A stretch of 64,000 nt of DNA from Callorhinchus milii (Eukaryota). The stretch lies in the NCBI RefSeq assembly GCF_018977255.1, contig NW_024704755.1, forward strand, positions 15,190,001 to 15,254,000, in the 5' to 3' direction. The translations under genes were made by a program, and so were the position numbers. This document shows positions 2,162-45,628 of this stretch, piece by piece. Position 1 is the stretch's first letter; every line of letters starts with the position of its first letter. The notes beneath the pieces were generated by a model. The model ran no database searches. It saw nothing but the letters and a program-made list of their open reading frames with translations, and was not told the origin of the DNA.

Positions 2162-2814
2162 GTATGTTTGATGTGAAGCGCTTTGATGTTTCCTTCTAAC
2201 ATAAAAGGGCTATACATAATGTAAGAATTGTTATTTTTATCTCCAGTTCACTTGATAAGTTGACTCTATGTTCAATGGAACTGAGAAGTTGAGGGGAGAA
2301 ATGTAATTTGAGGTTTTCAATATTATGAATGGTTTTCATAACGCAAATAAAGACTGCATTTAGAAACAGGAGAGCGTAAATTGAGGAAACAGAAATACTT
2401 TTGCACAGAGGTGATTAAAGTGTGGATTGCGTTACCACAAAGCACTGTTGAAGCTGTTGAGTCCATAAGTCAATTTGAAGGAGAATTGAAAAACCATATG
2501 AAAGATTACAGAAAAAGAGCAGAGGAATGGGATTGGAGTAGATAACTCAATTGGGAATTGAGCATCAATACAGACTCCATGTGACAAATGGCCTCCTGTG
2601 CTGTAACCATTCTTTATACTCAGTTTATACTCCAAATTCCTGACTGTCCAGGTCCTTTGGACGTCCTCCCGACATGAAAGGTGCTATACAAATGTAATTT
2701 GTTTTTTTTACTAAATTATTATACAATGTTAAGGTTCTGTTGGGGTTGAAACTGTATATACATTGTAAACACCTGTAAATGCTCTGATGAAATCACCTTG
2801 CTTTTTGTCCCCAG

Positions 2815-2943
2815 AGCCCAGTGTTCCTATGTGCCGGGGTGAGTTACGGCACTGGAGAAATGGCTACTACACCCTTATCCATGACACCAATGTGGAAAAT
2901 TCCGAGTTTGCACTCGATCTGCTGCTGTTTTGCAGGTGCAAAG
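2815..2943 (+). CDS. OGFOD1: OGFOD1 exon ([42 protein letters not shown])
   Basis: cccag/gtacag, phase 1-1; VPMC.GELRHW..G.YTLIHD motif. Confidence 0.95.
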
Positions 2944-5084
2944 GTACAGGTTCTTACTTACATTTGAGAACGAGCTGCAGCACCTTCAGAAAACAGCTTG
3001 TGTAGAGACACAGCACTATCCGGGGGTGGGGTTGTTGTAGAGGTAGAGTGTTTGGTGGTGTCTCTGGAGGTACAGAATCTTCTGCCTTCTGACTGAGGAA
3101 GATATTTCGACTGGGAGGAACAATAAAATGGGTGAAAATGGAAAGCTATCCTTTGGGCAATGTGTATTTGTGTTAGACACGATCCTTTCAGGGACCATAG
3201 ATAAGTATTTATGTCAAGCATGAAATTCACCTCATAGATTGAGGGTGGTGTTTGCTATGCCGGCAGCTTTGTGCCAAAGAAAATTTATTTTAAAATAACT
3301 TTCAAATCAGCTTTCTGAAATAGCATGTGACAGCTGGAATAAAGAGAGGAAGCAAAATAAAAACATTTAAATAATGAAATAACTGGCACTTTTGTAGCAT
3401 CGGTAGGTTTGAAACATTTCCGAACACTTCACAGTAATTGTTGTCTGGTCGAGGTACTGTTTTTGTGAGCTGTTGAATAGTATTGTAAGATTTTTAACAT
3501 TCCCCTGACAGGCAGACAAGAGTTTGGTTAATATCAATGCATGTATGAATAGTACCACAAGGTGCTGGCTAATATTAGTTGCTGAGGCTTGTGGTGTGAG
3601 GAGCTAAATTAACATTGGTGAGGTTGCAGTTAAAACATGAGAGGTGTTACTGAGCTTGATAGAATGACATAGATGGAAAATTAACAGGTTCGAGATGTGG
3701 TTAGTAATGCAGGGTGCTGACTGAAAGGTGTTAAAACAACAGTTTGCATTTACACAATTGGCTCCCTTGTTTTGCCCACAAAATATACAGTCAATTCACT
3801 TTCCAGCAGCAACACAAACTTGCATTTGTATTGCGCCCTTCACGTGGGATAGAGTTACAGAGACTGAGCCTGAGATGGTTGCAAAATGGGGGCAGAGGAG
3901 ATTGCATATAGCCTTGTATTGGAGGAAATACTGATCTTATTGCAAGAAATTAACATCTGCGGAGATACAGTCAGTAATACAGGCTCGGAGGGGTTACTGA
4001 ACCTTATTGCTTGATGCAGGTTAAGTTAAAATCAGCACAGTGGTGCAATATTTAGCAACGCAGGATGCTGCCTGGGAGGAGCTGACAGGTTGCAGTTCTA
4101 GCTAGTGATACTGGACTCTAGCGGTTTACGGTTACTAATCTGGAAAGTATGACTGAAACAGATTAACATCAGACATACTGTCAGTGATGCACAACAATGG
4201 CTGGGAGGAGTAAATGAAACATGCGATAGCATTAAATTAGTAAGATGTGGTTGATGGAGCTGTCGCCGGCTCAGACACAAATAGACCAAATAGTCTCCTT
4301 CTGTGTAGTAAACAAGTAAAAAGGCTGGCTGCCACATTTCGCCCACAAATTTACAGTCTATTCACTTTACAGTCTATTGAGACATCTAGAAGACGTGGAA
4401 AGCGCTATATCAAATGCAAGGATTATTATTATTATAAACCTATGATTCTTTCTACTATTTGATCCCAGCCAACAATCCCTCAAATAAAATTGGTCATTCA
4501 CTTCATGGCTATTTGTGGGACATTGCTATGTGCAAATTGGCTACTGCATTTGCCAACAAATCTAGTTACTACACACAATCATAAAATCCTGTGAAGTTCA
4601 TTGAAATGTCTAGATGATGTGATAAGGCGCTATATCAACAAAGGTTATTATTTTTACTGATAATGGTTCAGTTCCACAACATTTGGCCTGATTCAAGCCA
4701 GCATCCTTACCATGTCGTCAGGTTACAATATAATAAGAGGAATATTATCTCAATGAATTTAACGTAGTTTCCTTCCGCTTGCACCACCTAATATTATCTG
4801 AACAATCTTACATGGAATAAGCACAGCTCTTCACGTGAAGGATTTGTGATCAGACCATCAGTGTCATGAACAAGTAGCTTTAGTGCTGAAATCCGTGCTT
4901 AGGGCTGTTGTGTTTCCTGATCTTATTGGGGAGGTAAAGAACTGTATATTGAAGGAGGAAAAGCTTCAGGATCAGTTCTGTAATAGGTAAAGGCTGTGAT
5001 GCAGGTGGGTGGATGAGGACATAACAGCAGAGGTAAGCGTTGAGAGCTCGGACAAGCAACTAAAAAGCAGTGTTTGTGTTTCAG

Positions 5085-8819: not shown

Positions 8820-9920
8820 TCCTTTCTAAGTTCCTGGAATGAAATATTGCTTCCCAGCTTCGCTCCTTCCTCTCCCACCACTCCCTTCACAAACCCTTCC
8901 AATTGGGTTTTGGCGCCGCCCACAGCACAGGAACAGCTTTAGTCAAAAGGGGCAAATGTCTCTCTGCAATCATGGCTCCCTTTGGCTCCTCGATCTCCTT
9001 GACCTCTCTGCTGCCTTCGATACATTGACCAGTCTGTCCTCCTCCACCGCCTCTCCTCACCCTTCATGGTTCACACCGGCTCCAATTCATCTCCCCAAAG
9101 GTTTCTCCTCTAGCCGACACACCGTCTCATGCAGGGTTCCCCAGGGCTGTGTCATTGGTCCCCTCCTATTCAATATCTCTATACTCCTTCTTGGTGACAT
9201 CATCCACAGATATGGGGTTAATTTCCACATGTATGTGGATGACACCCAACTCTATCTCTCTGTCTCCAACCTTGACTTCAGGACCTCAGCTGTCCTGACA
9301 GAATGTCTGTCAGACATCAAGTCCTAGATGAGAACTATGTTTCTACAGTTGAACATCAACAAGACCGAGGTCCTCTGGATTTGCTCCCATCAGCGTCTGT
9401 ACACCTCAAGCGCTGATAGTATCACCATCCAAGGATTCACACTCCACCTCACTGAGCCACTCTTGAACCTTGGCATCTTGTTTGACCCTCAACTATCCTT
9501 TCTATCCCATCTCCATGCCATGACCAGCTCTGCCTTGCCCCATGTACACAACATCGCCTAGCTCCACCAGTGTCTTACACCACAGGCCACCGTGACCCTC
9601 ATACACACATTCATAACATCAAGGCTGGACTATGCAAACTCCTTGCTTCTCAGCCTCCCCAACTCCTCCCTCCGTAGACTGCAGATCATCCAGAACTCTG
9701 TAGCCTGTGTCTTCTCCTGCACCAGGCTCCATGACCCTATCACCCCCATCATCGCCCGACTCCACTGGTTTCCCGTCAAACTGAGGATACAGTTCAAGAT
9801 CCTACACCCCTCCGATCCCAACCCCCAGCTTTGGTCCAAAACATTGATTGTCCAGTGCCTTGGGATGTCCTCCCAACATGAAAGGCGCTATCCAAATGTA
9901 CAAATCTGATTATGTTGATG
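8820..9920 (+). mobile_element. 5'-truncated L2 LINE (RT remnant: LLDLSAAFDT, VPQGCVIGPLLF, YVDDTQLY) with 3' tail
   Basis: RT motifs with stops; ttgggatgtcctccc..aaaggcgctat tail. Confidence 0.9.
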
Positions 9921-9921
9921 T

Positions 9922-10635
9922 TTAAGTTTGAGTCCTGTCCTTTCTCCCCCACATCTGTGCCATGACCGGCACTGCCTACCACCACCTCTGCAACATTGCC
10001 AAAATCCGCCACTGCCTCACCCCTCAGGCTGCTGAAACCCTCACCCATGCATTTGTCACCTCAAGGCTTGATTGTGGGAACTCCCTCCTCATCGCCCTTC
10101 CCAAATCTTCCCTTCACAAGCTGCAGATCATCCAAAACTCAGCAGCTCGTGTACTCTCACGCACTAGGCTCCATGACCCCATCACTCCCACCCTCGCCCA
10201 ACTCCACTGGCTCCCCATTCCCCAGAGGATTGAGTTCCAGATCCTCGTCCTCACCTTCAAGGCCATCCATGGCCTTGACCCCTCCTACCTCTCTGACCTG
10301 CTGACTCCCTACCAACCTGCTCACTCCCTCCGTTCAGCGAGCTCCAGCCTGCTCCATGTCTCCCGCCCGATCCGCCCTACCATTGGTGGCCGGTCTTTCA
10401 GCCTCTCTGCCCCCACACTCTGGAACTCCATCCCACGGTCCCTTTGCCTCACTGCCTCCCTCGCCTCCTTCAAGGCCGGTCTCAAGACCCTTCTCTTCGA
10501 CCGTGCCTTTGGTCTCCCTCCCACCTCTCTGCCTTCCCTCACCCCTACACCACCACTCCTCCTTGCTTGGGCCCCGACACCTGACTGTACAGCGCTTTGG
10601 GACGTCCTCCCGGCATGAAAGGCGCTCTATAAATG
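9922..10635 (+). mobile_element. Second 5'-truncated L2 LINE, tandem to the first
   Basis: ORF2 C-terminus (AFVTSRLD..LQIIQNSAARVL..LHWLP) and (TTG)n tail. Confidence 0.9.
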
Positions 10636-14858: not shown

Positions 14859-15164
14859 TTGTTGGGGATACCTTAGTGAATCAACCACCTCGTCTGGAAA
14901 GTGAGAAAGGTGAACGCGTAATATTTTACTGCATCGTTCCCCTCGTTCGGGCAACAAATGCAATCAGGGTCCATTGGTGGAAAGACGATGATCATAACTT
15001 CTTAGACGCAAAGAAAGATTCCCGACAAATATTCAAAATTCCGAACAGGGCAAGTGCAACTTTTACGCTCGAGAGGTTGAGAGTGAGTGATGCGGGAGTC
15101 TATTACTGCAGAGTCCAGGGCGAGATCACTGGCAATGGAACAGGTACTACACTTCAGGTCTCTG
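14859..15164 (+). CDS. Gene A germline-joined VJ-type Ig V exon (..RVIFYC..VHWWKD..DAGVYYCRVQGEITGNGTGTTLQVS)
   Basis: cacag/gtgagt, phase 1-1; B-strand Cys, C-strand Trp, DxGxYxC, J-like GxGT-x-L-x-V in the same exon. Confidence 0.93.
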
Positions 15165-17472
15165 GTGAGTGTTACACACTTGGTAATCACACACTTTATT
15201 TGTAAAAATCTTCCGTTTTTTGCTGTTTTCTATTATGTATATATATACACACACATATTATATATATATGTACACATATGTTTATATATATCGTACACAT
15301 ACTTATGTGTATATAATTTACTTTCCAATAGTGGGTTGTCATCGTATCCACAACTCACTGAAAACAATTCAATTTATCTTCCAAAACGGATCTCGCAGCC
15401 CCAAAGACACCTCACATTTGATCGCATTTGGTAGCTATTTGCGCAAAAAAACATGTCACTGACGCTGCTGTTATTTCAGATAATTTTCTACCGTTTAACG
15501 ACTGAGCTGATCTGAGCCCTACAAAAAAATACATATGCAGGTGTGTGAGAAAGATTGCTCGTTGTACCTTATTGCACAACATTCGTTGCATTCGCCCACC
15601 AACCACACGTACCATATATACAAACGTGTTTCGAAATCGATTCTGTTTACGCATCTGAGGAGGTGAAAAGTTTTGAGAGATGATTTCAAAATCCACTGAA
15701 TCTGTACCGTTAAGAAGTGTCACAATAAGCATCAGAGAAATAGCAAACCCAGTAAAGCACGAGGAGCTATTTCTGTGTTCCCTTTACAAAGAGATATGCA
15801 TTAAAATTAAATTTAATAAATCTGGCTCTGAATGAACGAGAGGGGAAATCATTATTCTTACTACTCTCTTATTTTTATTTGAAATTAAATCAGATCCTTT
15901 ACCCTGTTATTTATTTGAAGGTTTTAACTTTTAACTCGGGTCAAACATAGTTTCAAATAATCACATTCACTTTAGTAGAACGGTCCCCTACTTTTGAGCT
16001 TTAGTTGATGTAAAACGATTTATTTCATTTGTATCAAAAAAAATCGCCCCGATCTCACTGCAACTAATTTAAAGGCAGGATTCAAAATACCTTGTGAATG
16101 TACTGTATAATCAGATACCACTAGGTATCCGAGTTAAGTAGTTTAACCTAAACAGAACATTTAAGATGATACTATTTACTAATAATAATCCTTGCATTTG
16201 ATACATTGCCTTTTAAGTCCAGAGGATGTCTCAAAAGCACTTCACAGGATTTTATCACAATAATAATGATTATACAGTACATTTTCATGTCAGCAGGACA
16301 TCTCAAAGTGCTTCACAAGATTTATTATAAATGTACTGACTGTGTATTTCATAGGAGAACGCACTTGTCAATTTGCACATATCGTGAAACAAACAATCAA
16401 TTTAACTGGAGGTTATCAGACAGAGCAGAAATTCATAATCATAATGCCTCCAAAAAGATTGTTGTCATCTAGTTAGTACAAGCAGTCTAAATTTCAACCC
16501 ACATAAAAAGTAAATCTGCCGAAATCTGAATTAAAACTGTTTGTGGGTCACTGCTGTGCACAATTAGCTGCAGCATTTTGCCCACAAAATACACAGTCAG
16601 CTGACTTCACAGTATATTATGTGAAGCATTTTGAGACGTCTGTTAACATTTATTTTAAATAAATGTAAAATCACGCCCCAAAGAAAAAGTGAAAGTTTGG
16701 GAAATTTTTACAACAAAAAGAATCAACATCCTAATTGCCTCTGTGGGAAATTCCTTTAAGTTTCCTTTCTCTTTAGGTAATGAGCTTAAATGTATGCAAA
16801 ATTTTAGACAATATTTATTATTGCCTTTAGTATTTAGTAACAGTTTACAGCTGCTGCAAACTTTTTTTGACAAACATTAATTTGTATAGTTTACACAGAT
16901 TGCACTTAACTTCGCTAGCATCATGCCCAACAAAGATCATTTTAATGGTATAATAGAGCTGGTGAGGTAGATGATGTTTGGAGATGATATGAGGAGTTTA
17001 TTGCATATGTGCAAATAATGATATAACAATCCTTGCATTTGGTACTACGCCTTTCTGTCAGGAGGACGTCTCAAAGTGGATGTTACAGAATTTTACTGCT
17101 AAATGGAGTGACTGAATTTTTCGACTAACACTGCAGCCCAATAGCACACAGCAAAGTCCCATAAACAGCCATAAAACACATGACTAATTTTATTTTGGAT
17201 TGTTGGCCAGAACGCCGGGAGAAGCTTCCTTTGTTGGTTGAGAAGTACTTTGAGATGTTTCTAAGTTATAGTACTTTGAGATGTTTCTAATAAACTTTAC
17301 GTTTATTCTTTCATAGATGAAGGGACTTTCTACCATTATCCTGGCACACAATGCTCCAGAGAACCAAAATGTCACTCTCTTCATGGTTGTTTGTGGGATA
17401 CTGCTGTGCATAAACCGGCTGCAAGATTTGCCTACAAATATCCGGTCACTACATTTCAGAGAAAATTCTGTG

Positions 17473-17832: not shown

Positions 17833-18126
17833 CTCCACCATCTGCTCCGAAGATTTTCTCCATGGGTTCATCGGATTCTCCAATATATGGGTGTACAACA
17901 ACTGGCTATTACCCCGATGACTTAAAAATGGAGTTCTTTAAAAACGACATTAAACTAACTGAGTTAAAAGAAGATAAACAACTGACAGCAGAAGGAGAGT
18001 ATAATTTTTCTAGTACTGTGGAAGAAAAAGAGCCTGTCCCGATTGGGACCACATATTCCTGTACGGTATCTCACCCCACCCTCAAAAATTCGCCTAAGGC
18101 GGTCAATTATACAGTCATTCCTGAAG
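17833..18126 (+). CDS. Gene A C1-set Ig exon (APPSAPKIF..YGCTTTGYYPDDLKMEF..YSCTVSHPTL..)
   Basis: taaag/gtaatg, phase 1-1; CxxxG(F/Y)YP and YxCxVxHxxL C1 motifs; the usual C-strand Trp is replaced by Phe. Confidence 0.92.
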
Positions 18127-18536: not shown

Positions 18537-18641
18537 AAAAAGGACTTAATGACTCTTTTGCCTGGTGGATCTATGTCTGTGTAGGGGCTGGAGCTCTTCT
18601 TCTGCTGCTCCCGATAGTAATATGTGCCTGTAAATGCAGAA
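18537..18641 (+). CDS. Gene A transmembrane exon (EKGLNDSFAWWIYVCVGAGALLLLLPIVICACKCR)
   Basis: tttcag/gtaaga, phase 1-1; uncharged hydrophobic stretch followed by a basic, Cys-rich stop-transfer segment. Confidence 0.88.
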
Positions 18642-19303
18642 GTAAGAGTATTTCATTGACCATTATTAGATTTGTTTTAATAAGCATAATAACTTGCAAT
18701 TAATATAGTGCTTATAACAACAAAGCTGCTCAAATGTTTCACAGGCAATTGTTGGCAAGAAAAGGAACAGTTCAATTGTAGCTAAATATTTTGATTAAAC
18801 TCCAGCAGTCACCAAGCCTTGGCTCATGCTAACCTGTGCTTAATACTCTCCGGAATTTGGTACTCTGGATGGGTCACTCCAGGAAGAATTTTGCGCATAG
18901 CAAGGTTCACTTCAGTGAACGGCCAATTCATCTGTTGTTGCCCATGACAATGGGAAAAGCTCCCTTTCCTTTTTTGATTTGTGTCAGGAGAATCTTTCGT
19001 GGCCACCTGACCAGGTGGACAAGACCTCAGTTTAACATCTCACTGAAGGAAGGCACCTCCGATAATTCAGCACCCCCTCAGTACTTCATAGGGGTGTTAG
19101 CCCTGGACTATGATCTGAAGTTCAACTAACAATCTTCTGACCCAGTTAATCTGGTGTTTGGATCATGCCACAGCGCCAATTCTTACCAAAAGTATACAGG
19201 ATTGCACTACATAACAACATTCAATATTAAGTTCACTATCATTTATTTCCAGATCAACATTTTTTAAAGAAATTTGAATCACTAGTTTCTGTCTGCCTTG
19301 CAG

Positions 19304-20296: not shown

Positions 20297-20499
20297 TTCG
20301 AGCCAAGAGACGTAAATCGGAGATCTGTGTACGTTGCTCTGGATTGAAAACGGCAAAACCCCAAAGCAAGAAAGAGGAAGCAGGCAGTCAAGTCACCCAG
20401 AAGCCAAAAACAAATGTGAACAAAGGAACAAAAGCTAAGAACAAAGCACCAAGAACCCAGAAGCACCGTACGAGAGATAAGGATGCCATCGTTGAATGA
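20297..20499 (+). CDS. Gene A terminal cytoplasmic exon: phase 0 gives FEPRDVNRRSVYVALD* (ITIM, stop at 20347); phase 1 gives a 66-codon basic Tyr-free tail (stop at 20499)
   Basis: catacag acceptor; Tyr at codon 12 as in the paralogous exons; ATTAAA at 20556-20561. Confidence 0.7.
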
Positions 20500-25109: not shown

Positions 25110-26600
25110 TAATCGGAATATAACGCTACTCTGCTGTCTGGCCTCATCACTGCTCTCCCTGGACCCATCACTGCTCTCAAACTACTCCCCCATCTCCAAC
25201 CTCCCTTTCCTCTCCATGGTCTGGAATGAGTTGTTGTTTCCCAGCTTCACTCCTTCCTCGCCCACTGCTGCCTTCACAAAACCCTCCAATAGGGTTTCCG
25301 TGCTGCCCACAGACAAGTGACAAATTACATTCTGTCTATCTGTAACCAGGCCTCACTCTGCCTCCTTGTCCTCCTTGACCTCTCTGCTGCCTTTGACCCG
25401 TTGACCACTCTATCCTCATCCACTACATCTCTTCTCACCTCAACCTTCACGGCTCTGTCCTTGGCTGGTTCAGATCTTACCTCTCACACCACCTGCAGTT
25501 CATCTCCACAAATGGTTTCTGCTCTTGTCCATCTTGTGCAACATTCCTCAGGGCTCTGTCCTTGGTCCCCTCTTCTTCAATATCTATATGCTCCCTCTTG
25601 GTGATATCATCCGCAGACATGGGGTCAACTTAGACGTGTATGTGGATGACATCCAACTCTACCACTCTGTCTCCATCTTTGACTCCAGGACCACTGTTGT
25701 CCTGACAGAATGTCTGTCAGACAACAAGTCCTGGATGGGAGCTAACTTTCTCCAGTTGACCAAGGCCCTCCTGCATTGCTCCAGTCAGCACCTCCATAAG
25801 TCAGACATGGACAGCATCACCATTCATGAATGCACTCTACACATCATGGAGCCAATACAGAACATTGGCATAATGTTCGATCCTCAACTGTCCTTCATTC
25901 CCCATATCCGTGCCATGATCCGCTCCACCTTTCCCCACCTCCACAACATCACCCGGCTCCCCCACAGTCTCACATCTCAGGCCACCGGAACCTTCATGCA
26001 TGCATTCATAACATCCAGGCTCGACTATGCAAACTCCTTGCTTGTCAGCCCCCCAAATCTTCACTCCATGGGCTGCAGATCATCCAGATCTCTGCAGCTC
26101 GTGTCCTCTCCCACACTAGGCTCTGTGGCCCTGTCACCCCCATTCTCGCCCGACTCCGCTGGCTTCCCATCACACAGGGGATACAGTTCAAGATCCTGTT
26201 CCTCACCTTCAAAGCCCTCCATGGTCTTGCTCCCCCCTACCTCTGCGACCTCCTCACCCCCGACCATCCTGCTTGCTCCCTCCGCTCCGTGGGCTCCGAC
26301 CTGCTCCACGTCCCCTGGCTTGCCTGCCCCACCATCGGCAGGCAAGCCTTTACCCACTCTACCCCCACCCTCTGGAATTCCATCCCGCAGTCCCTCCACC
26401 TCATGCCCCCCCGTACCTTGCCTCCTTGAAGACCCATTTCAAAACCCTCCTCTTTGACCGTGCTTTTGATCACTCTGATTTTCCCTCCTGCCCCTACCCT
26501 CCCCATTCGCACCCCCCTTGGGTCCGAAACATTGACTGTCCAGCACCTTTGGACGTCCTCCTGAAGTGAAAGGCACTATACAAATGTAATGTTGTTGTTG
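25110..26600 (+). mobile_element. 5'-truncated L2 LINE with RT remnant
   Basis: LVLLDLSAAFD, PQGSVLGPLFF.IYM, YVDDIQLY motifs; frameshifts; (TTG)n tail. Confidence 0.92.
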
Positions 26601-40082: not shown

Positions 40083-40247
40083 TTATGCGGTTCCTGACTC
40101 CATGAAAGTGCCATCTTCGTAGTTTCTGATCTTTACCTCGGAATACTCTGAATTCTTGTCGCTGTGTTTAGCTTTTCCTGTATTTTTGGAGCGAGGCAAA
40201 TCCAGAGCAGCGTATGTCAGCTTGTTAGCGGCTGCTCCTCGCTTGGT
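40083..40247 (-). CDS. Gene C last exon (TKRGAAANKLTYAALDL..NSEYSEVKI..*) with ITIM LTYAAL and SEYSEV
   Basis: ttttcag acceptor, phase 0, TAA at 40083-40085. Confidence 0.9.
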   Translation of the reverse strand, partial: TKRGAAANKLTYAALDLPRSKNTGKAKHSDKNSEYSEVKIRNYEDGTFMESGTA

Positions 40248-40949
40248 CTGAAAAAACAACGTTTGGTTTGTCTTTGTGCTCGTTCCACAGAGAGATGTAC
40301 ATAGAATGGTACAGGAACTGACCATCCGGTGTTTATACTTCACACGAGCTCCATCCCTTCCTATTTTCTCTATAACTCTCTTATCTCTTCCCCTCATGTA
40401 TGCAACACATTTTACATTACATTATTCCAAACCCTTCACCCCAAGGACGATTGATATTGCAAACTGCGATATGTAGCTGCAGATTTAAGGGCTGTAGATC
40501 TCAACGATGAGCTGACAACTGCTTTCATGGGTTGGCGAAGATCAGTTAATGATGCAATTCCTGATTGCTCTGTGGGACATTGACATCTCAGGATGTCTGG
40601 ATCGGAATATATCTGATCCTTGTTAATTTATTTGCTGAATTGTTGATTCGATTATAAAGATAAAGTACTAGAACTATATTGCCCAGAAGACCAGACGGCC
40701 CATCGTACACGTGCTGTCTGTTTGAAAGAATAATCTATTGAGTCCCATTTACCCGCCTTTTCCCCAATACTCTTTAAAATTGATCCGTTTTACATATCTT
40801 CATTATCTTTAGAAAAAGAAATGATATTGGTTGAATCTTGGAAAGCTGAAAATGTTCCACAACCAAATGCAGCATCGAAAACGAGGTAGAAGATTGGAGG
40901 AGGGGACAAAATAATAACGATGAAAATCAATGAACCCAATTTACCAAAC

Positions 40950-41093
40950 CTGTTCAATACAAGATTTCTCTATGCTGTGTACCTGGGCGTATACTGTCCT
41001 GTCTTCCTGATGTTTATTTCTTGGAGTTTTATTGGAACTTCTCAAATCCAATGTTACATAAGCCACGTTGTCACCCGCTGCTGCCTCCCCCGC
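40950..41093 (-). CDS. Gene C cytoplasmic exon (AGEAAAGDNVAYVTLDL..DRTVYAQ[VHSIEKSCIEQ]) with ITIM VAYVTL and ITSM TVYAQV; alternative donor at 40983
   Basis: ttttacag acceptor, phase 0; two in-phase donors. Confidence 0.85.
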
Positions 41094-41249: not shown

Positions 41250-41494
41250 ATAATAATAATAATAATAATCCTTGCATTTGATATAGCGCTTTTCATGTCG
41301 GGAGGACGTCCCAAAGTGCTTCACAGAAAACACTGTAAAGTGAATTGACTGTATATTTTTGTGGGCGAACGTGGCAGCCAATTGCGCACAGCAATGTCCC
41401 ACAAACAGTCGTGGATTGAAAATGACCAATTTATTATTGTTTTGTTTTTTGGAGGGATTATTATTAGGCGTGTGGAGTAAGGAAACTTGCCCAA
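41250..41494 (-). mobile_element. Young tRNA/Deu SINE, head truncated, in a gene C intron
   Basis: Near-identical core and tail. Confidence 0.88.
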
Positions 41495-42137
41495 GAGTTC
41501 TGTCAAGAGGCAGTGAAATTCATTTTTCCAATTGATGTTTTTAAATCCACCCCGTGAAAAAATGTTGCATATCTGATTAGATGGATCAAACAACAATTAT
41601 CACTTAAAATATTATCATTTAAAATATGCTGGGACTCCTCGTGTTCCTTGACATATGCCAGACTCGGAAGGATTACCAGAAAGTTAAATTATTGCCAGCA
41701 AACCGTGTTTATTTACGTAACAACTTAATCCTGAAACGGGAAATAAATAGGTCTGTAATTCTGGAGGAATGATGTTAAGGTTGGAAACTTTCAGCTCATA
41801 GTCCGAGTCAACATGAGCTCTATCTTGTTGGAGGTGGGTTGGTAAACCAAGTTCCTGTACTCTTATTTCGGTTTACGTTTAAGATTATTGGAGAATACTC
41901 TAACACAGAATAAGGCTTGTCCGGTGTCCTCGCGAATGGTAATCATGATAAATTGGCAGAACACTTCATGAAGGTTTATCGGACTATATTGTGTGTAAGT
42001 TGGTTCGACCAAATAGAGTCGCTACAAAGACAACGATTGTTCATGAAGCATTTTAAGATGTTTGGAATGATACCGGCCACAATGATAATCACTGAGTTGG
42101 TCCATTGGTCACCCAAATAATTTGGTGACAAACTTAC

Positions 42138-42181
42138 CTGATCTTCAAGTTTGCCCAATTGAGTCAGGTTTCCCTTTGATC
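42138..42181 (-). CDS. Gene C cytoplasmic linker exon (GSKGNLTQLGKLEDQ)
   Basis: ttttag/gtaagt, phase 1-0. Confidence 0.85.
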
Positions 42182-42901: not shown

Positions 42902-43015
42902 CGTTTTTCTTTTTTAATTGGCATCGCTTCCCAATAATGATCACAAGCGCCAGAAATGCGAAACCACCCGCTGCACATCCAGCCCACAATAAATATCGGA
43001 TTACATTTTTACTGT
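42902..43015 (-). CDS. Gene C transmembrane exon (DSKNVIRYLLWAGCAAGGFAFLALVIIIGKRCQLKKKN)
   Basis: ctccag/gtaaga, phase 1-1, 114 nt. Confidence 0.92.
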
Positions 43016-44167: not shown

Positions 44168-44488
44168 CTGCTTTAGATTTTGGGAAAGCGAAGGTGGCAA
44201 TAGCTGAAGTCTTGAGGCTGATGTGAGACACCAGACAGTTATAAACAGATCCATTCTGGCCAGACTGTGTGACTTCGATAGAGCTCGAGGCCTTATAGAG
44301 ATCCTCTGAGTTCTGCTTCTCAGTGGAACCTGACTCTTCCAGCTTTATTTCTGGTGTTGGCACAATTTCGGTGCCATCTTTATACCAAGTGAAGGTGATT
44401 TCCTTTGGGTGAAACAAAGCAGTTTCACACACAAGAGTCTGAGGCTTAGGTGAATTCCTAGAGAAAATCTTCAGTGGAGTTGGGGGAA
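44168..44488 (-). CDS. Gene C C1-set exon (VPPTPLKIF..TLVCETALFHPKEITFTWYKDG..YNCLVSHISLKT..)
   Basis: ctgcag/gtaaga, phase 1-1, open frame; C1 motifs. Confidence 0.94.
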
Positions 44489-45092: not shown

Positions 45093-45413
45093 CGCACACA
45101 GTTAATCGCGATCCAGATCCTGTTCCGATTATTGATCCCTGACGGACCACTACACAGCGATAGACTCCAGAGTCCTGTGAAATCACATTCAAGAACTGGA
45201 AGAAGCTGCTTCCTTTAGTTTTTACACCAAATAGTTTCCTGTTATCCTCCTTTGTATCCAAATAGCCACTCTCACCCTTCTTATTCCACTGCACCTCCAC
45301 TTCTGAACCGTCTTGAGAGAAGGGGAAGATACAGCGGAAGGTAACATTTGTTCCTCTGATGGCAGCCACATGGTCGGGGATTTGAGTCACTTTCACGGAA
45401 GAATCGCCATCAA
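45093..45413 (-). CDS. Gene C germline-joined VJ-type V exon (..NVTFRC..VQWNK..DSGVYRCVVVRQGSIIGTGSGSRLTVC)
   Basis: tgacag/gtgagt, phase 1-1, open frame. Confidence 0.94.
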
Positions 45414-45576: not shown

Positions 45577-45628
45577 CTGTTGAAATAATGTGTAAGGCAG
45601 ACAGGTACAGGAAGACAACACTCCCCAT
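45577..45628 (-). CDS. Gene C leader exon (MGSVVFLYLSALHIIST)
   Basis: ATG, phase-1 donor gtatat; encodes the same peptide as the D leader. Confidence 0.88.

Follow-up and report, generated by a model that had tools for sequence, protein, structure and literature searches.

The window analyzed here, i.e., the whole stretch of 64,000 nucleotides from Callorhinchus milii, contains no N runs and consists of vertebrate DNA with SINE and LINE debris. Five units carrying V and C1 sequences (genes A to E) were identified in it, and of these, gene C alone is complete and bears a tail (Table 1). The 3' end of OGFOD1 adjoins the left edge of this receptor cluster, which is the only flank seen; the family cluster itself reaches at least 15.57 Mb and spans more than 350 kb. 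The segment singled out in the earlier note, positions 40083–41093 on the minus strand, corresponds to the last two coding exons of gene C, since its limits coincide exactly with the first base of the next-to-last coding exon and the final base of the stop codon.

Table 1. Features identified in the window (TM, transmembrane segment; minus-strand exons of gene C are listed in the order of translation)
Feature	Position	Strand	Description
OGFOD1 3' exons	1627-1960, about 2810-2950	+	match residues 352-413 (E 4e-16) and 448-491 (E 3e-15) of the human OGFOD1 structure 4nhx
LINE reverse-transcriptase fragments (RVT_1)	8830-10615, 25405-26454	+	
Gene A	14885-15166, 17835-18092, about 18560-18650, about 20330-20480	+	divergent paralogue; V exon, C1 exon, TM-like exon FAWWIYVCVGAGALLLLLPIVICAC, decayed ITIM cassette
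Gene B	34490-34173, 33145-32852, 30776-30702	-	V, C1, uncharged TM exon
Gene C, exon 1	45577..45628	-	start codon and signal peptide MGSVVFLYLSALHIIST; ends in phase 1; GT donor
Gene C, exon 2	45093..45413	-	V-set and J-like GTGSGSRLTV in one exon; 321 nt, phase 1-1
Gene C, exon 3	44168..44488	-	C1-set (VPPTPLKI...YNCLVSHISL); 321 nt, phase 1-1
Gene C, exon 4	42902..43015	-	stalk and TM YLLWAGCAAGGFAFLALVIIIG, basic stop-transfer KRCQLKKKN; ends in phase 1
Gene C, exon 5	42138..42181	-	44-nt juxtamembrane linker GSKGNLTQLGKLEDQ, phase 1 to 0; AG acceptor, GTAAGT donor
Gene C, exon 6	40983..41093	-	cassette 1 AGEAAAGDNVAYVTLDLRSSNKTPRNKHQEDRTVYAQ; 111 nt, phase 0-0; AG acceptor, GT donor
Gene C, exon 7 (coding part)	40083..40247	-	cassette 2 TKRGAAANKLTYAALDLPRSKNTGKAKHSDKNSEYSEVKIRNYEDGTFMESGTA (TKRGAAANKLTYAALDL...SEYSEVKIRNYEDGTFMESGTA followed by the stop codon); AG acceptor, starts in phase 0
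V and C1 fragments	47964-47884, 55968-55796	-	isolated
Gene D	58996-58946, 58785-58681, 58159-57848	-	partial duplicate of gene C
Gene E	62022-61759, 61404-61222	-	in-frame stop in V exon

When its seven coding exons are joined at the AG/GT sites, gene C gives an open frame of 375 amino acids with canonical splice sites throughout: the gene is intact, as had previously been claimed. The exons encode, in this order, a signal peptide, a V(J) domain, a C1 domain, a TM segment and a linker, and they end with two homologous phase-0 exons. The NCBI model P0002, located at 15,230,083–15,235,628 on scaffold MU249845.1, is 100% identical to the exons described here, exon 2 included. The product of exon 1 is identical to the N-terminus of both P0002 and another NCBI model, P0001, and the two tail exons are present in both models. 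P0002 skips the C1 exon of gene C and stays in frame because this exon is 321 nt long and begins and ends in phase 1. Phase 1 at the end of the TM exon does not fit phase 0 at the start of exon 6, and a direct join of these two exons was considered and rejected for this reason. The mismatch is resolved by the 44-nt linker exon, which is also part of P0002 but does not appear in the earlier note. A SINE-like element is present at 41250–41600, within the intron that separates exon 5 from exon 6.

The extracellular part consists of a V domain and a C1 domain, in agreement with the V-C1 ectodomain proposed earlier. Exon 2, in which the V-set and the J-like motif are encoded together, is a non-rearranging VJ exon and shows Pfam V-set and Ig_3 matches. 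A single C1 exon lies between the V and TM exons: it matches the Pfam C1-set family PF07654 (E 1e-12) and carries the YNCLVSH hallmark. The membrane span contains no charged residue, and a helix was found at residues 233–263 in the structure model. In this low-confidence model (pLDDT 52 overall, about 70–78 in the ectodomain), the top Foldseek matches were Ig light chains and TCR beta chains. When a profile of the ectodomain (14 sequences) was compared with the PDB, Ig chains and the UrIg2 structure 9dmx, which was among the best matches (124 bits), ranked above SIRP-alpha (102 bits). Judged by these profiles, the ectodomain taken alone is a generic VJ-C1 structure, at least as near to Ig or UrIg2 as it is to SIRP.

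In the tail, the tyrosines of each pair are separated by exactly 22 residues and the two pairs by 13 residues. Canonical ITIMs surround three of the four tyrosines: Tyr1 (VAYVTL) in exon 6, and Tyr3 (LTYAAL) and Tyr4 (SEYSEV) in exon 7. The second tyrosine had been assigned to a TVYAQV motif, but the V of this motif is the GTA of the exon 6 splice donor, and the spliced product reads TVYAQ/T, which for this reason lacks the hydrophobic +3 residue of ITIM and ITSM sequences; the same TVYAQT occurs in P0002 and in the orthologues. The four-tyrosine SIRP-alpha-like layout described in the earlier note is therefore correct as regards the positions of the tyrosines, the 22-residue spacing of both pairs and the SEYSEV motif, but not as regards the presence of four canonical motifs. 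SEYSEV is genuine, since the terminal exon reads on after it and the next residues (V/I/L-K/R-I) are conserved in the orthologues. Directly after SEYSE, exon 7 contains a strong-looking splice donor (GAG/GTAAAG at 40137–40132, minus strand); it is probably unused, given that the orthologues keep the read-through residues, and an alternative C-terminus is possible.

The ungapped BLOSUM62 local alignment between exons 6 and 7 has a score of 58, with the tyrosines in register. Shuffled sequences gave 21.0 ± 4.3, and none of 5000 shuffles reached 58. This alignment shows that the two exons are homologous, and the phases (0-0 in exon 6, 0 at the start of exon 7) match the pair of homologous phase-0 exons that had been postulated. 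Exon 6 scored 67.8 bits with the HMM built on cassette 1, and exon 7 scored 80.6 bits with that built on cassette 2. The product of gene C thus shows the features by which ITIM receptors are recognized, namely a type I topology, an uncharged TM segment, the motif (I/V/L/S)xYxx(L/V/I) and a pairing of the tyrosines that is compatible with tandem SH2 domains.

No tail exons were found in the window for the other four V/C1 units, apart from a decayed relic downstream of gene A. This relic is an ITIM cassette broken by stop codons (SVYVALD, directly followed by a stop codon, then ...RTKHQEPRSTVR), and the inhibitory tail of gene A has apparently been lost. For gene B, the window yielded no tail cassette, and this gene possibly belongs to the tail-less members of the family. 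The signal-peptide exon of gene D is identical to that of gene C and its C1 sequence is 73% identical, while its V sequence stops after about 20 residues; gene D is probably a pseudogene. Gene E and the isolated V and C1 fragments point to a birth-and-death turnover in this cluster.

Protein searches yielded dozens of high-scoring relatives of gene C, all of them from cartilaginous fishes. The family has members in Callorhinchus, Heptranchias, Heterodontus, Hypanus, Mobula, Hemitrygon, Scyliorhinus, Chiloscyllium, and Mustelus, and on the basis of these sequences gene C belongs to a multigene family distributed across chimaeras, sharks, and rays. The tail layout, which had been presented as a trait of gene C, is indeed found there, but it is shared by this whole chondrichthyan family rather than peculiar to one gene. 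The full-length members have the V-C1 architecture. Tyr1, Tyr3, and Tyr4 are invariant in the nine members aligned and Tyr2 is present in eight of them; among 18 members, the paired tyrosines are 21–22 residues apart in nearly all cases and the pairs are 12–13 residues apart in most. The fact that this pattern has been conserved over the split between chimaeras, sharks, and rays argues for a function of the tail. The number of cassettes ranges from one to four or more: P0022 has one, most members have two, and P0013, P0019, P0020, P0023, P0048, and P0093 have three or more. Since this number varies among the members, duplication of the exon cassette must have been recurrent. Tail-less forms also exist. 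Outside the window, P0041 of Scyliorhinus canicula was seen to have an Arg inside its TM segment and a short tail devoid of tyrosines; this protein is possibly an activating counterpart that couples to an adaptor, in which case the family would consist of paired receptors like SIRP-alpha and SIRP-beta.

The names given to these genes by NCBI are inconsistent (SIRP-alpha-like, SIRP-beta-like, tapasin-related-like, B7-H6-like, PD-L1-like, and TCR-beta-like). The automatic label "SIRP-alpha-like" is thus already known for genes of this family; no paper describing a shark SIRP-like family was found in the literature searched.

The relationship with SIRP-alpha was analyzed using an HMMER profile of eight full-length members, with which 1.84 billion representatives were searched exhaustively. 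The bat SIRP-alpha P0171 was matched in one stretch (profile positions 123–354 to residues 250–503, 145.7 bits) covering the C1 domain d3, the TM segment and the entire tail. The four human motifs cited for comparison in the earlier note (ITYADL, TEYASI, LTYADL, and SEYASV) are all present in this bat protein, the tyrosines of which are spaced by 23, 16, and 25 residues. In the hhalign comparison between the family profile and SIRP-alpha (probability 99.15%, E 4e-19), Tyr1 to Tyr4 are aligned one to one and in order. SIRP-alpha was also the best non-Ig match in a single-sequence search, and several of the best moderate-length matches looked up outside Chondrichthyes are annotated as SIRP-like (lungfish, frog, sturgeon, and bat). 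The motif VPPTP/VPPTL opens the C1 domain both in the family and in SIRP-alpha d3.

With an HMM restricted to the tail, SIRP-alpha scored 39 bits, in the form of two cassettes (20.2 and 18.3 bits), and was the best match among the ITIM tails tried; the 12 others, which were included for the sole purpose of calibration, gave 18.5–19.0 bits (Siglec-7), 14.4 bits (PZR), 13.0 bits (CD33), and less than 10 bits in the remaining cases. The fact that one cassette of Siglec-7 scored 18.5 bits, about as much as each single SIRP-alpha cassette, means that the similarity per cassette is partly generic to phosphatase-docking motifs. In Pfam, no family specific to the tail was found, and only weak "SIT" matches were obtained for the SIRP-alpha and shark tails alike. 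Both SIRP-alpha cassettes match cassette 2 of the shark family (24.9 and 19.7 bits) and not cassette 1 (5.3 and 2.8 bits); a cassette-by-cassette orthology with SIRP-alpha was therefore considered unsupported. The doubling may have been independent in the two lineages, or cassette 1 of the sharks may have diverged.

In a tree of C1 domains, the family forms a solid clade (support 99/98). It joins the C1 domains of SIRPs from bat, skink, and lungfish as against those of Ig, TCR, MHC, and B2M, with a weak support of 29/76, the Ig, TCR, and MHC outgroups being used for calibration only. As far as the locus is concerned, human OGFOD1 is located on a different chromosome from SIRPA and is not known as one of its neighbors, and the OGFOD1 flank speaks weakly against synteny with SIRPA, as seen from one side of the cluster.

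The number and order of the exons may also be compared with those of the SIRPs. Mouse SIRP-alpha is reported to have eight exons, which encode the signal peptide, the V domain, two C1 domains, the TM segment and three cytoplasmic parts, and its short isoform skips the C1 exons (PMC12324903). By exon count and order, gene C follows this plan minus one C1 exon: each domain has an exon of its own, three further exons are cytoplasmic, and the C1-skipping form has its parallel as well. Between two bat SIRP-alpha isoforms there is a four-residue difference that directly follows REITQ and lies nine residues ahead of Tyr1, which suggests that an exon junction is located there, analogous to the one separating exon 5 from exon 6 in gene C. 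Further common traits are the J-like motif in the V domain and the C1-set sequence after it, the uncharged TM segment, the four tyrosines in two pairs (22/13/22 in the shark family versus 23/16/25 in bat), and the occurrence of multigene clusters including tail-less members and possibly an activating member with an Arg in the TM segment, i.e., P0041. SIRP-alpha differs in having two C1 domains (V-C1-C1) instead of one, TEYASI instead of the non-ITIM TVYAQT at the second tyrosine, two cassettes that both resemble shark cassette 2, and a flanking gene other than OGFOD1.

Other known systems resemble gene C in part. The tails of Siglec-7/CD33, PZR/MPZL1, PECAM-1, PD-1, and BTLA have an ITIM paired with an ITIM or ITSM about 17–29 residues apart and recruit SHP-1 or SHP-2, but they contain one pair only, their ectodomains are devoid of C1-set domains and none of them reaches the total tail score of SIRP-alpha. 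In UrIg and UrIg2 of elasmobranchs, as in gene C, C1-set sequence comes after a VJ exon that does not rearrange; however, UrIg2 is described with nine C1-type domains and no ITIM is mentioned in the text of the paper (PMC12227049), as opposed to the single C1 domain and ITIM tail of the shark family. The identification of gene C as a UrIg was rejected on these grounds. TCR and Ig light chains have the same V(J)-C1(-TM) order, and the resemblance is one of architecture only: the V exon of gene C is germline-joined, its TM segment is uncharged and it has a predicted signaling tail of its own.

Taken as a whole, the sequence data show that gene C is intact and belongs to an old multigene family of the chondrichthyans, the tail of which consists of duplicated "Tyr-22-Tyr" cassettes on phase-0 exons, and they make it probable that gene C encodes a SIRP-like inhibitory receptor with a single C1 domain. 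The SIRPs are best described as the closest recognizable relatives of this family outside Chondrichthyes, and the family looks like the nearest counterpart in cartilaginous fishes of the mammalian "don't-eat-me" receptor SIRP-alpha. Strict orthology is another matter, since three tests (the ectodomain, the cassette match and the flanking gene) fail to back it. It is rather unlikely that the family arose from an independent VJ-C1 lineage, with an antigen-receptor-, UrIg- or B7-like origin for example, in which a generic ITIM cassette was doubled by exon duplication and came to resemble SIRP-alpha under the constraints of tandem-SH2 docking. The preference of both SIRP-alpha cassettes for shark cassette 2 rather than 1 and the lability of the cassette number within the family would fit such a convergence, whereas the single collinear alignment over C1, TM, and all four tyrosines would not. 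The tail score of SIRP-alpha is the highest in the panel, although, taken singly, the cassettes of Siglec-7 and SIRP-alpha have equal scores. An independent origin is likewise consistent with an ectodomain equally near to Ig and UrIg2 and with the weak support of the C1 tree (29/76), but the VPPTP/VPPTL start shared with SIRP-alpha d3 and an exon layout like that of SIRP-alpha, C1-skipping isoforms included, argue against it. The OGFOD1 flank and the inconsistent NCBI names can be set against the SIRP-like annotation of several of the non-chondrichthyan matches. As to the alternative raised in the earlier note, a SIRP relative or a convergent design, the cassette looks homologous to that of SIRP-alpha, and the collinear alignment and the best tail match favor the former; it does not become a clean choice, given the cassette 2 matches, the support of 29/76, and OGFOD1.

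That the tail exons are relics or unused, gene C being effectively a non-signaling or decoy receptor, is very improbable. The paralogues in the window are tail-less or pseudogenes, and gene A carries a decayed ITIM relic, which would fit this explanation; in gene C, however, no stop codon interrupts the frame of the seven exons, their splice sites are canonical, both tail exons are included in P0001 and P0002, and the tyrosines and their spacing are conserved in chimaeras, sharks, and rays.

If gene C is a SIRP-like inhibitory receptor, its V domain would engage a ligand on another cell and Src-family kinases would phosphorylate the tail. The main SHP-2 site of SIRP-alpha is its C-terminal pair. 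In gene C, the C-terminal cassette is the most SIRP-alpha-like unit and the likely phosphatase dock: LTYAAL-22-SEYSEV, the 22-residue spacing of which fits bidentate docking, might bind the tandem SH2 domains of SHP-1, SHP-2, or SHP-2L, whereupon the autoinhibition of the phosphatase would be released and activating signals would be damped, as in the case of SIRP-alpha. SHP-1 and SHP-2, as well as SHP-2L, the latter being a third tandem-SH2 phosphatase, have been reported from sharks to mammals, and their SH2 pockets are conserved and prefer a hydrophobic +3 residue (PMC12151841). Cassette 1 would combine the canonical ITIM VAYVTL with the strongly conserved, non-canonical TVYAQT, which should bind SHP SH2 domains poorly and probably has another SH2 partner or one of lower affinity; an SH2 domain of the Csk or SAP type can be put forward as a speculation. 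As regards gene C itself, we infer the inhibitory function, the recruitment of SHP-1/2 and the binding of CD47 from the sequence.

Apart from a few associated proteins, C1-set domains occur only in the adaptive immune system. The existence in all cartilaginous fishes of a conserved V-C1-TM family that does not rearrange and has a SIRP-type tail would push SIRP-like inhibitory signaling back to the base of the jawed vertebrates, and it would supply a receptor with the domain order of a TCR or Ig light chain. We tentatively propose, as a possibility that is still doubtful, that this family is the cartilaginous-fish descendant of an ancestral non-rearranging VJ-C1 membrane receptor which also gave rise to the SIRPs, and that the last common ancestor of jawed vertebrates already possessed a SIRP-type phosphatase-docking tail, carried by a V-C1 chain resembling an antigen receptor. 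The SIRPs have been proposed to be relatives of the antigen-receptor precursor (PMC2785349), and the present family, if this proposal about its origin is true, would offer a present-day model for the "primitive myeloid V-C1 receptor" that the structure of SIRP-alpha had led others to postulate (PMC2785349). The strict 22-residue spacing of the tyrosines and the conserved, odd TVYAQT motif would provide handles on the evolution of tandem-SH2 phosphatase docking.
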